64,000 nucleotides of DNA from Haliotis rubra (Eukaryota): assembly GCF_003918875.1 (NCBI RefSeq), contig NW_025767508.1, positions 1 through 64,000 on the forward strand, written 5' to 3'. Within the stretch, counting starts at the first letter, position 1; the number at the start of each line of letters is the position of its first letter. The notes beneath the pieces were generated by a model. It had not been told where the DNA came from and made no database searches. It saw only the letters and a list, made by a program, of their open reading frames with translations. The position numbers and the translations under genes were made by a program. Positions 14,503-20,700 of this stretch are shown here, piece after piece.

Positions 14503-14713
14503 ATGAGAAGTACAGATCAGAAAAAAGACCTGTTTTGGTCTGATATACCTCACGAAAAGGCCACAATGGTGACCAAGAAGAAGAAAACTAAACGCAAGAA
14601 CATGCACTTGCGGACACCTAAACTGTGGGGCAGTTTAATGCAAACACCACGACATGCATTCAGGAAGAAGAAAAAAGTCACAAGTCACCATGTCCCAAAG
14701 GTACACACACACA

Positions 14714-14748
<35 letters not shown>

Positions 14749-17700
14749 GCACACACACACACACACATACATACATACATACTTCAATTCATCCGTGCAG
14801 GTGGATATGGGGTTGAAACGACGGCGAGTCGTCAAATTGCACTTAGCTGTTGATATGTGTTATGTCGACAGTAGTGAGTGAGTGAATTAATATTTAACGT
14901 CACATCGACAATATTTCAGCCATACCGTGACGTGAACAATCTATACATTAAACCTAAATAAACCTTTACCATAAAACGCTGTCGTCAAAGGACAGTTGTA
15001 ATTCCTCAGTATGAATTCATTTTTCAACATATTTGATGTAAAAAGATATTCTATTCTTCATATGGCGCAGAAATTTGGGGTTTACATACACTTGGAAAAT
15101 TAGAAATGGTACATTTGTATGCCTCTACAAAGTTTTTGGGTGTTAAACAAACACACCCAAATATCATGATCTATGTAGAATGTGGCAGGTTTCCTTAATA
15201 TCTATATATACTCTATTGAAAGCAATTCGGTATTGGATACATTTATTAAACATGCCAACCTAACCAAAAATGTTATAGAAAGAGTGCTTTTATATGATAG
15301 AAATGGACAAAAACTGTATGACTGATATAAATCAATTATTATTTTCTACTGGATTTGGATATATTTGGCATAAAAGAAATTGAACACATATTCATCAAAT
15401 CATTTACTCAAAGACTAAAAGATATGTATTTTCAAACTGGCAAAAAGATTATCTACTTCCGCAATATCCATACCTGTCATGTTTAAATGTAAAAAGCATA
15501 GGGTAAGTTTAAGATGCTCATCTCATGAACTTTTAATTGAGAAAGGTAGATATGTAAATACGAACAGAGAACATAGAACTTGTCAGTTATGTTATTCAAA
15601 TGCAATTGAAGACGAGTATCATTTTCCTCTTGTAGGCCCTAACAACAATAATCTTCTAAGCAAATATATATATGCCCATCAAAACAGGCTTAAGTTTTCA
15701 CTACTTCTAAACAGTTCAAATACTGAAGAAATTGAAAACCTGTCCATGTATATTTTCTACGCATTTGTACATAGAAAAGCGAATTTGTTCATTGAACGTG
15801 TATAAAGCAATTGTACATAGTGTACTATATGAGGTACCCTGAGGTATAACATTTGGAGTACCATGAATAATAAAATTTATCACCAAACTGTGTTCCACAG
15901 GAACATTTGGTTCAAAAAACCATGTTTTCATAGATACAATGTGACAATGCTATGATCCAATTCAATGCTATGACATCGCTGCACTGCAAATGTAATGGCA
16001 GTACCATGTTCAGAGATGTACATTTTACATCGATGAAGGTGATTTTGATGATAAATAGAATCTCACCCGTGTCTTCTGATATCAAATATATCAACACTCG
16101 TTGTTAAAATATCCTTTTTGTGACTGACTCGTGTTTGTTGTTTAACGCGCCCCTACCTGAGAGGCATGATCGACATTGAAACTGACCGTGCTTGTTTGAG
16201 ATTTGATTGAAAATTGAGATTTGATTAATTCTTGTCATATAGCTGACATATTGCGCGATGAGGAGTTAGCCAAACATTTGTGTCAAACGTTGTGAAATTA
16301 CCATTCACATTTCAGAAAATCTGTTCAGAAGAAGACACATCATTCCTCGGTCATGTTAGGGATGTGGTATATAGACCAACTGATGATGACACATTCCCTT
16401 TGTATGTGAAATCAAGAAACACATACAAAATATGTCTGAAAGGAAAACTGAATATGGTTCAGCTCAAAGAGGCTATTGAATACAAAGACAGCATTCCTGC
16501 AGATCTACAGATGCTGACTCATCATGGCAAACTGATACGGCCATCCACACTGAAGAACGTGCAGCCAAATGACACAATCCATGTCATTGTAAGGAACAAA
16601 GGAGGAACGAAAGGCGCTGAAAAGAAACCATTACTTAAGAAAAAAGGTGATTGATGCACTTCTTCATGGCTGAAATTTCACATGCTTTTTCGACCAATGA
16701 ACTCCAACATAAAATTTGTTTCTGAAATTCCATTTCATTTAAATACCTTTAAACGATTTGGATTTTTTTCTTATTCAAATGGAATAGATGTAAACGTTGC
16801 TTAGAAAGTACGAGGGTCGATCAAAAAGTACCTAGCCTAACTATATTCTCGATGTCCAATGTTTGAAAAGCTTCCATTATATTTCGAAGGAATCGTTACC
16901 AAAGCCATATCCAAACTTGAGTAATGTGTGGGTAATGTGGTTAACCAGATATTTGTCATCACAACACATTGGTGTACAGTATTTCTAACAATATTGCAGA
17001 AAATGAAAACGGTAAGCCCTCAGATAATGCCAGATAAAATATGTTCAGTATAGTATTGGATGACTTCCCGTCATGATCAACAATCAAAGATTTGGACTGC
17101 CTGATTTATACTTTGTCGGGGGCTATCTCTTAAGGACACACCCATTTTAATCTTCAAAAACATTGTGTCCAGATATTCAAGCTGGCACTTTTTACAATGT
17201 ATTGTGAGCTGACACTTGAGTGACCATTCAGTATTTAGTTTGAACCCTTGTCATCATGTATGCATAAGTGAAAACATTAGAATAATGTCCTTATGATTAC
17301 GTCATCTGAAAGGTAGTGTCTCCAAAACAAGCTCTTTCGGTCAACATGAAGGGGGGTTGGGGTGTCACTTAAACCAGCGATTGTATTTTCAAATTGCTTA
17401 TTTATGAACTTTAATATCTAAGTGTCATTCTAGGGGACTTCTATCAATCTCAAACACACAACATATTTCCTGCATATTTTGTTTCCAGAAGTTTTTCATG
17501 CATTTATTGTAGATTTTGCGGTTTTGAGGGTACCAAGGAAAAGGTCAACCAAAATGGGGATCGTGAGACTGGAACATAGCAAAACAAAATTGTTTGTGCT
17601 TGACAGATAATATGTAGAAAAATAAAACATAAAAATAACTGCATTTGTATCGTTTTCTTGGTGATTCTACATACGTTTTGATCGCCCTCGTACATGAAGT

Positions 17701-20700
17701 TTTCTACAGTTATATATTAATTCTTGCACATTTATATAATGCGAAAGAGTATGGAAAATTAGGTACTTATTATACATAACAGTTACTACTATTGTCCCTA
17801 AATTCACTTTTTGTTAAGTGTCCAATTTGCATATTGGAGGTGTACTGCCGTGACACTTTTATATTTAATTCATATATAATATTTTTCACTACTTCTGTTT
17901 ATGTTAAAGGACCAGGCTTGCCCAATACTGCAACAGAGGAAGAGGTCCAGGAGTGGCTATTACGCAGCGTGAAAGTACCTAAACAGTTGATTAAGGATGA
18001 AGTGAAATACGTAAATGGGGACATGCTCAATGAATACACAGATTCCAATGAAATGAGAGAAGAACTTGGACTTCCCATGGGACTTTGTAGGAAAATTCTA
18101 TATTTGAACACCAAAGAATTTGATGATAAAACATTTGGATTGAGTAGGGAACAACTGGAATCCTTTACACCAAATCACATATGTGATTTTGCAAGAGATT
18201 CTTTTGCGGAAGACAAAAACCTCGGTAAGATTATTGAGGCTATTAAAACTGAACATATTGATGGTTTTGTAATAATGTTATATGAGAATCATGAAATGCT
18301 TGCTAAGGACTTGAATATTAAAAAGGTTTTAGGTAGGAAATTATTACTGTATGTAAAGAAGAGGATGAAGGATAGCTCAATGACTACCACAACAACAATG
18401 CACTTAAATGAAGCAAGTGACACACGACATATTCCATCCCTTGGTTTGAATCAGAGGAAGATTCCATCAGCAGCTGATACAACAAGAGAACCTTTCGCAG
18501 AACTACCTAGTCATACCCCTAATGCTTCTTCAAGTACTTCCTCACCAACTGTGGAAAGTCCTTCCATTACCTTCATACAGGAACACTTAGGATTAGATAT
18601 TAAAGAATACGTTGGTGAAGATAATCCGAATGAGTACCAACTACTTGCAATTCACAGTTCCTGGGAACCAAGTCATGAACTGGCTCAAATGTTTTTATTC
18701 TGGATTTTATGCAAAGGAAACGACTTTGAGGACACGTCTAAGAGAAGGAAACTTTGGAGTTTGATTGTCCAGAATACATCGACTTGGTTACAAACTTTAC
18801 CTGATAAAGTACAATCTGATTTCAAGAAAGGGAAAGGTGAATATCAATTTCAGTTCAAAGGACGAAAATCGATCCGTCTGAGCCAAGTTGGGGAAAAGAT
18901 GATCAAATATGAAAACATAACTCTCAAACAAAGAGATCACTACAAAAATCATATTCTTATTTTGCCTGGAAGTACTGCTCCAGTCCAAGACCATGTGTAT
19001 AGAATATATGATGGAAATTACCATTTGGAAGCTTCAATAAAGGATATCACAAACAAAATGTTTTGTATTGACGATACATTGACATGTATCAAACCTTTGA
19101 GTTTTGACCCCACTCCCTCAGAAGAAGGTGAACACCAAGAGAAGGATCTTGGTCTAACTTATTATGGTGAAATGAAGGAAAAGTATGGAATATCAACACA
19201 TGTTTCTAAAACAACTGCTAATACAAAAGCCCAGGATGGAGTGTCATTTCAGAGACCAAGGCCATTTAAACTGGACAGTCTTTGCACAGTATATTTCAAG
19301 GATTATGTTATGGATGTGACAGAAAGTGGAAGTGGAATGATAACACCGTCCTTAGAATTCAAATACTTTCGATCAAGTCTTGATACTGGTAACGAAAACA
19401 GTCCAATAGAAAAATTTCTCACAGAGACTTTGCGTTTTGCCTGTGGTTGCCTTAACAGACGTCGAAATGGAACCATCTATTTTGGAATTGCTGATGAGAA
19501 ACCTGTTGGTGGAATTACACGCAGGCATGGTCAGATAGTGGGGTTCCCCATCATAGAAGTTGACATTGACAGTAAAATAAAGTACGCAGATGAACTGAAT
19601 GAGGCCAAATCAAAATGTTTTGACTCACCATTAGCAAACAGCGCTGCAAAGGAATGTATCAAAGCACCCGTTTTTGTGAAGGTTGCCCCTTCACCAGACC
19701 AGGTTCCATTGTTTGTTATGGAGGTTGACATAGAGCCTGATTCACGTTTTTGCGAAGGCATAATTTTCAAACTGGATTTATCGAAAATATGTGGGAAGAA
19801 ACAGAGACCATTCCTGTTTGTTCGTGATGGACCCGAAACAAAAAAGATTGGTACTGATGCAGAAGAACTACACTTTGTAGACAAATTGAAGGAATGGGAC
19901 AATAAGCGCAAATTTGAAGAAGAACGGTCAGTTGATAGACATTGGTCCGATCAAAATGATCACAAATATTTGGCTGAAAAACTCTGTCGTAAATTATGCA
20001 AAACTAGCAACCAAATTGATTCTTCACTCTGGCCAATTCTAATTTCTAGCAAGCCACCAGATGCATTAAAGTCATCACTGTTTACTTCTCTTAGTTTCAT
20101 CTCAAGCATTCCTTGGTGTGCAGTTTTTGATTTTGATGAGGAATCGTTTAGAAATGGGATGTGCAAGCATTTTTTCAACAGTACACAAACAACTCTAACA
20201 AACGGAGACATATTCCGAGATGTTGAGAACAACAACATTTTGAGAGAACGATTAAAACTCCCAGAAAACAATGTGCTGATATTTTGCAATGGGCGATCTG
20301 ACTTTCGAATGCCTCACCTCACAAAACATGAATGGAAAAAAGAATACTCCCCAAACGTTAAAGGAGCAATAAACTTTTTTCAGCAAAAATCAGTTATTCC
20401 ACCTGGAAGAACTATTGCGGTGTTTTTACTCTTTGCAACGGATTTTCATGGTTTCTTGGATATCTTTGGAGAGATGACAACATTCTTTGGAAGTGAAAAC
20501 ATTGTACTTATTTGTGAAGAAATAGGCGTATTTCAAGAATTTCAACGCATGGCTTTAGTTCAAGAAATTGTCGAGAAAGAAGACATTGAACGGAATTGTG
20601 TTGTTGGCATGACGTGGGAGCAGACCAGTACTTCTATCAACAATCTAATAGGTGTTGACAAACAAACTGTAACATCTATACCAACCAGCAGTGGAGCACC

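Follow-up and report, generated by a model that had tools for sequence, protein, structure and literature searches.

The stretch analyzed here (the window) comprises 64,000 nucleotides of the blacklip abalone Haliotis rubra (contig NW_025767508.1, positions 1 to 64,000 of the forward strand) and contains a SAMD9-like gene in which a ubiquitin-like (Ubl) domain ending in Gly-Gly was found in front of tandem SAM domains and the SAMD9 core. It is a real, expressed gene of four exons, and its product falls within an old, molluscan subfamily of the SAMD9-like STAND proteins. The order of the parts in these proteins is the motif FWxD(I/V)PHEK, a basic run, the Ubl ending R-x-(K/R/I/M)-G-G, a flexible linker, tandem SAM, AlbA-like nuclease, SIR2-like, P-loop NTPase and TPR. 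We regard this Ubl-SAM-SAMD9 architecture and its ancient origin as practically certain, and the Gly-Gly pair as a candidate site of proteolytic cleavage.

Scripted translation of the four exons (Table 1), with GT..AG at all exon boundaries, gave exactly the 2144 aa of RefSeq XP_046551310.1, named 'sterile alpha motif domain-containing protein 9-like [Haliotis rubra]'. A first-pass annotation, made from the DNA letters alone, had proposed a very basic first exon, a Ubl exon and a giant SAMD9-like exon. All of its coordinates were borne out by sequence and translation, including those of the Gly codons, and its three exons stood, but the last exon, which is also present in H. asinina, had been missed. 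Exon 1 ends in phase 0. It contains two basic runs, KKKKTKRK and RKKKK, and the motif FWSDIPHEK, which is conserved in H. rufescens, Mizuhopecten and Sinanodonta. Exon 2 begins after the AG at 16314-15 and encodes LYVKS...VRNKGG, and its last base forms with 17910-11 the codon GGA (Gly).

Both predicted joins were examined in Logan contigs from four small public runs (X1 to X4) of one study, recorded only as 'RNA?', which were compared over window positions 12450-18400. The contigs were 95-99% identical to the window, which means that they derive from different individuals or from a close relative. The in-phase join of the Ubl exon to the SAMD9-like exon, 16646|17910, was present in contigs of two samples (twice in X1, once in X2) and skipped exactly the intron. 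Besides, one X1 contig consisted of 14558-14696 followed by 16314-16410, a numbering that fits the 14700|16316 junction exactly and thus links the basic exon 1 to exon 2. Two gene models of H. asinina, also named X1 and X2, contain the same junctions, which is independent support. The introns were without contig cover except for short high-depth repeat pieces.

The reading of exon 2 as ubiquitin-like was confirmed by profile, alignment and fold comparisons. Scanned alone, exon 2 matched Pfam PF00240 with a borderline 26.3 bits (gathering cut-off 25.4). A scan of residues 1-420 gave 23.0 bits, whereas the scallop orthologue reached 30.0 and the remaining orthologues 15-24.7. A phmmer comparison with PDB ubiquitins placed VRNKGG in register with LRLRGG. 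An AlphaFold2 (AF2) model built on a nine-sequence alignment predicted a beta-grasp at residues 92-159 (pLDDT 82-88), followed by disorder from the K-G-G onwards (residues 161-178, pLDDT <50) and by two helical bundles. The predicted beta-grasp was similar to ubiquitin (Foldseek TMt 0.75-0.79, root mean square deviation 2.2-2.8; VIA Z 9-10.6), and its closest structural matches included the Ubls of OASL, ISG15 and FAT10, with the chicken OASL Ubl as top VIA match (Z 10.6). Going by this model, exon 2 encodes a genuine beta-grasp of the ubiquitin family.

Between H. rubra and H. asinina, the ratio of non-synonymous to synonymous substitution rates (dN/dS) was 0.22 for the Ubl core, 0.19-0.23 for the SAMD9 core and 0.28 for the whole protein; judged from these codon comparisons, the Ubl is under purifying selection. 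The 22-codon linker after the Gly-Gly showed a dN/dS of 1.15, a value derived from only 9 changes (7 non-synonymous and 2 synonymous). That the Ubl exon might be a chance open frame, or an exon of another transcript, was effectively refuted by the spliced joints, the gene models in three Haliotis species, bivalve orthologues with the same exon phases and the low dN/dS; the one weak point in favor of such an artefact is the guessed RNA status of the runs.

The Ubl does not replace the SAM region, since tandem SAM domains follow it. Modelled alone with AF2, the helical part formed two five-helix bundles, and the matches listed by Foldseek were nearly all SAM domains, including the tandem SAMs of SARM1 and liprin as well as Scm/Ph (TMt 0.72-0.75), all at E >0.001. 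Pfam SAM_2 scored 29 bits in the Potamilus homologue (cut-off 20.5) and only 15.1 in H. rubra. The assignment to SAM was therefore made on the uniform identity of the fold matches and the Pfam match in Potamilus. SARM1 is similar on the level of the fold only, and its effector, a TIR NADase, is unrelated. Further downstream, residues 463-1437 aligned with residues 38-991 of the human SAMD9 chain 9zjr_A (phmmer, E 2.2e-87), and the SAMD9 effector domain 7ksp_A was also matched (E 4e-19). The Walker A sequence HEPGAGGSTL aligned with human HHPGCGGTTL and was invariant in a multiple alignment (A2). For the C-terminal OB-fold region, one weak second stretch was detected (residues 1713-1892, i-E 0.29).

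Human SAMD9 and SAMD9L are antiviral, tRNA-cleaving STAND proteins. The molluscan protein shares with them the homologous AlbA-like, SIR2-like and P-loop NTPase core leading into TPR, with GAGGST in the abalone P-loop and GCGGTT in the human one, and SAM-fold domains located N-terminally to this core. It differs in that the SAM is in tandem instead of single and is preceded by a basic region and a Ubl ending in Gly-Gly, to which an RRM is added in bivalves.

Relatives were searched for by an exhaustive phmmer comparison of residues 66-330 with 1.84 billion representatives, which returned mostly polyubiquitins and a small set of proteins of the same architecture. The same N-terminal architecture was found in H. 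asinina, H. rufescens, the scallop Mizuhopecten yessoensis ('SAMD9-like', 2479 aa) and the unionid freshwater mussels Sinanodonta woodiana (several loci, one with a full-length protein of 2477 aa) and Potamilus streckersoni; an unnamed 138-aa fragment was also among the matches. Some of the relatives carry the automatic UniProt label 'Ubiquitin-like domain-containing protein'. Word-based protein searches were unfit as a survey, as no species other than H. asinina and H. rubra came back from the big exon, residues 66-330 or a full-length profile of four sequences.

In bivalves, the conserved motif, which has no family assignment, lies between the basic run and an additional N-terminal RRM (residues 1-70 in Mizuhopecten and Sinanodonta; weak Pfam matches to RRM_1 and to the third RRM of PARP14). 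The three Haliotis models share their starting Met, and no upstream RRM exon was found in the window, in the second H. rubra copy of the locus on contig C2072 (described below) or in the 6 kb upstream of the H. asinina gene. In S. woodiana, the Ubl is encoded by a separate exon located directly before the giant exon, with a phase 0 start and a phase 1 end as in Haliotis, and the intron lies 19 residues after the Gly-Gly compared to 13 in Haliotis. The shared architecture and exon phases show that the fusion arose once, before the divergence of gastropods and bivalves.

A multiple alignment of nine N-terminal regions (276 positions, 20–72% identity to H. rubra) contained 7 invariant positions, i.e., both glycines, four residues of the ubiquitin core (Ile36, Gln41, Leu43, and Gly47) and one Asp. 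The first-pass annotation had staked its proposal on conservation of the Gly-Gly, and the pair was unchanged in abalone, scallop and unionid mussels alike, in all nine sequences in register with G75-G76 of ubiquitin. It is followed by T, M or A, in no case by P; R or K occupies the Arg72 position, and N, S, G or A the Leu73 position (P4). Beyond the Gly-Gly the linker varies freely and differs in length. Since the pair is invariant across both gastropods and bivalves, selection appears to maintain it, and a functional constraint on the Gly-Gly is, from the alignment, very probable.

Ubiquitin and Ubl genes with residues after the Gly-Gly (polyubiquitin, UBA52, RPS27A, FAU, NEDD8, SUMO, ISG15) are processed at this point, and most integral UBL domains have lost the motif. 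It is for these reasons that the pair is read here as a putative cleavage site, and by this analogy the prospects for actual cleavage after the Gly-Gly look evenly poised. The Gly-Gly would then be kept as an endoproteolytic site, and the cut after Gly163 would be made by a host ubiquitin/Ubl-specific protease, probably a dedicated enzyme and not one of the generic deubiquitinases. Such a cut would separate a basic, RNA-binding Ubl piece from the SAM-SAMD9 effector, and the outcome might be two products from one mRNA, or a latent effector released to polymerise via its SAM domains. Any released piece would be an extended Ubl protein and not a simple modifier, because the Ubl is not N-terminal. 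Compared to the fusion precursors polyubiquitin, UBA52, RPS27A and FAU/FUBI-eS30, the molluscan protein has the same in-register Gly-Gly, an in-frame partner and a following residue other than Pro, and the unionid copies read GGMQ as in a polyubiquitin junction. It differs from them in the internal position of the Ubl, in a partner of ~1980 residues instead of a small ribosomal protein, in the loss of Leu8, Ile44 and Leu73, and in that its processing is only putative.

Several observations weigh against cleavage. The Ubl lies behind 94 residues in Haliotis and about 215-260 residues, including the RRM, in bivalves, and this internal position suggests a coupling in cis that cleavage would break. 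The part in front of the Ubl is a probable RNA-binding module, which a cut would detach. In the H. rubra Ubl, Leu8 is replaced by R, Ile44 by T, Val70 by I and Leu73 by N, whereas His68 is kept; in bivalves, Leu8 is K/N, Ile44 is L/F and Leu73 is G/A. Thus, neither the Ile44 hydrophobic patch (Leu8, Ile44, Val70) nor the Leu73 of ubiquitin-type modifiers is conserved, and Leu8, Ile44 and Leu73 are determinants for generic deubiquitinases; the patch and Leu73 serve most deubiquitinases and also E1. Leu73 matters for many deubiquitinases, and L73P is used as a protease-resistant form of ubiquitin. A few uncleaved UBLs, e.g., that of SF3A1, retain their Gly-Gly. Furthermore, only about four independent lineages were sampled, and the runs that contain the joints stem from a single study and are only guessed to be RNA.

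The Ubl may instead be an integral domain that is never cleaved, i.e., a docking or regulatory module that acts, for example, by binding a ubiquitin receptor or the proteasome as a built-in ubiquitin-fusion-degradation signal, or as a check on the SAM domains or the effector. The upstream basic/RRM part would then sense RNA in cis, and the Gly-Gly would persist within a flexible hinge rich in Gly, Lys and Ser. We consider this a real possibility that falls short of probable. It agrees with the place of the Ubl behind the conserved motif, the basic run and, in bivalves, the RRM, with the loss of the Ile44 patch and Leu73, and with a linker that is Gly-rich also beyond the Gly-Gly (GGTKGA, GGMQCGSS). 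Beta-grasp domains are also built into other antiviral multidomain proteins, namely as the tandem Ubls of OASL and the ULD of TBK1/IKK; these sit at the C-terminus or inside the protein and are not considered cleavage substrates, whereas the molluscan Ubl has a strictly conserved Gly-Gly in front of a disordered linker. It is difficult to reconcile with an uncleaved domain that exactly the two ubiquitin-homologous glycines are invariant while other linker positions are free to vary, and that integral UBLs generally are without Gly-Gly. A role in ubiquitin-fusion degradation is further weakened by the Lys48 position, which is not conserved and is His in bivalves. N-terminal adaptor domains as such are common in STAND proteins (PMC5445408), in line with an integral Ubl.

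Another explanation is that the Ubl-Gly-Gly is a decoy, spared by host enzymes and cut by a viral deubiquitinase or Ubl protease, e.g., of a mollusc herpesvirus or another large DNA virus, by which the SAMD9-like effector would be unleashed. SAMD9 is an antiviral effector antagonized by viruses, the Gly-Gly is conserved at the start of a disordered linker, the lost deubiquitinase determinants could keep host enzymes off, and the linker, on its nine changes, has the raised dN/dS given above. On the other hand, a site that stays strictly invariant over so deep a divergence is more readily explained by a conserved host enzyme than by an arms race, and selection on the remainder of the Ubl is purifying and not diversifying. 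The same holds for the comparison with the NLRP1 and CARD8 tripwires, which likewise are STAND-type immune proteins with a disordered N-terminal linker as possible protease target: the molluscan candidate site is invariant and not rapidly evolving, and no diversifying selection was evident at the site. We therefore find a viral tripwire unlikely. An adenoviral-type protease site, which had been suggested earlier, was rejected. Adenain-type proteases need M, I or L at P4, and this consensus is absent from all of the aligned sites. A classical N-degron switch, also suggested earlier, was set aside as unlikely, as cleavage would expose T, M or A at the N-terminus, residues that are stabilising in the Arg/N-degron pathway.

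If cleavage released a conjugatable, ISG15-like modifier made in step with the effector, the R or K at the Arg72 position together with the Gly-Gly would be accounted for, and the presence of OASL, ISG15 and FAT10 Ubls among the closest structural matches would be in agreement with it. However, the released piece would carry an N-terminal extension of 94 to about 260 residues, the Ile44 patch is not conserved, and no dedicated E1 or E2 turned up, although no search for one was made. We consider such a modifier very unlikely. To our knowledge, molluscs are animals without interferon and ISG15. A broader proposal is that the molluscan antiviral STAND protein is switched in a regulated manner through its Ubl-Gly-Gly, either as a decoy for viral deubiquitinase-type proteases or as the target of a dedicated host protease that frees an ISG15-like Ubl piece able to bind RNA, in step with the SAMD9 effector; we regard this as rather doubtful.

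The gene model as such is already in RefSeq, and the Ubl-SAM-SAMD9 architecture is apparently undescribed, as no account of a Ubl-SAMD9 fusion came up in full-text literature searches. Mekhedov et al. (2017; PMC5445408) described CARD, Death, Pyrin and FIIND (DEATH-superfamily) N-termini in invertebrate and fish members of the family and SAM as limited to vertebrates, and never mentioned ubiquitin. In a 2025 evolutionary study (PMC12680541), neither ubiquitin nor molluscs are mentioned. In humans, SAMD9 and SAMD9L are of major importance as antiviral and disease genes, and work on their regulation continues. The present results add an old molluscan branch in which tandem SAM domains lie behind a Ubl with a Gly-Gly kept since before the split of gastropods and bivalves, and provide the directly testable idea that a SAMD9-like effector is controlled by proteolysis at a site of the ubiquitin type. 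They also bear on farmed abalone, scallops and mussels, in which viruses cause mass mortalities. If the site is not cleaved, the protein is one more adaptor-domain variant of a STAND protein.

Table 1. Features of the Ubl-bearing SAMD9-like gene of H. rubra (window coordinates)
Feature	Position	Strand	Evidence
Exon 1, coding	14503..14700	+	Exact translation to XP_046551310.1; run contigs over 14453-14696
Intron 1, GT..AG	14701..16315	+	Sequence, run contigs, gene model
Exon 2, Ubl exon (phase 0 start, phase 1 end)	16316..16646	+	Pfam, splice contigs, exact translation
Predicted ubiquitin-like beta-grasp domain, residues 92-163	16391..16606	+	PF00240, AF2, Foldseek/VIA, dN/dS
Gly162-Gly163, candidate cleavage site	16601..16606	+	Register with ubiquitin G75-G76; invariant in 9/9 sequences
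Lys-rich flexible linker, first part	16607..16646, resumes 17910-17935	+	AF2 pLDDT <50 for residues 161-178
Intron 2, GT..AG, 1263 nt	16647..17909	+	Joint in X1 (2 contigs) and X2 (1 contig)
Exon 3, giant: tandem SAM domains and SAMD9 core	17910..23737	+	Sequence homology, exact translation
Tandem SAM-like domains, residues 186-335	17936..18385	+	AF2 pLDDT 90.7, Foldseek matches
SAMD9 core: AlbA-like nuclease domain, P-loop NTPase, into TPR region	19298..22222	+	Alignment to human SAMD9 structure chains
Exon 4, last 25 codons and stop (26 codons)	23956..24033	+	Exact translation; same exon in H. asinina

The A-run at 14521-14526 was found to be polymorphic, with six A's in the window and five in the C2072 copy, the X2-X4 contigs and H. 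asinina. In the five-A allele, the start is ATG 14490 and the sequence begins MEMTYEKYRSEK..., which matches the H. asinina start MAMEMTYEKYRSEKDLFWSD. In the six-A allele of the window, there is an in-frame TGA at 14497-99 and the start is ATG 14503 (MRSTDQKK...). The two alleles thus differ in the first ~10 residues. Two loose contig ends were considered as alternative exons and rejected: the end at 14656 resembles a transcript on contig C2194 by chance, over 18 nt, and the end at 12752 looks by eye like the reverse complement of a stretch of the C2194 locus and was taken as a repeat.

A compound (CA)n/(ACGC)n microsatellite (~14703-14790) lies directly after the donor of exon 1. Intronic pieces at 14838-15036, 16032-16230 and 16828-17026 had contig depths up to ~1100 and are presumably expressed repeats or transposon fragments. 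Retention of intron 2 would stop the frame two codons past the donor (16647-16654, ..KKKGD*). The resulting short protein would stand alone, with the basic part, the Ubl and a tail of 15 residues behind the Gly-Gly, similar to a Ubl precursor. The unnamed 138-aa database protein has the shape of this predicted product; no clear read support for retention was seen in the contigs of the four runs.

A search of the H. rubra genome for the Ubl detected only this locus and its twin on C2072, where the Ubl exon is 100% identical (1129149-1129478); other SAMD9-like loci were not individually checked for diverged Ubls. Window positions 9000-29000 and C2072:1122000-1141999 were shown to be collinear with 98.5-99.9% identity, introns and flanks included, except for one indel block at 15829-16214. 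The C2072 copy is probably the other haplotype (a haplotig pair) rather than a true duplication. RefSeq splits it into a 467-aa 'uncharacterized' Ubl-bearing protein and a 1638-aa N-truncated SAMD9-like protein. A broken allele was ruled out, as the big exon is open and differs from that of the window by 7 substitutions and no indel, and the split is thus a matter of annotation.

At least four further SAMD9-like loci are present in H. rubra (contigs C2322, C2406, C2223, and C1847; 25-28% identity to this one), two of them with stop codons within the match. In S. woodiana, several Ubl-bearing SAMD9-like models are located on a single chromosome (CM100996.1) and have closely spaced locus tags (016512-016533), which suggests a tandem cluster. 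Besides, phmmer matched an unrelated 810-aa protein with alternating ubiquitin and Hint-like units that resembles self-cleaving ubiquitin-Hint (BUBL-type) proteins.

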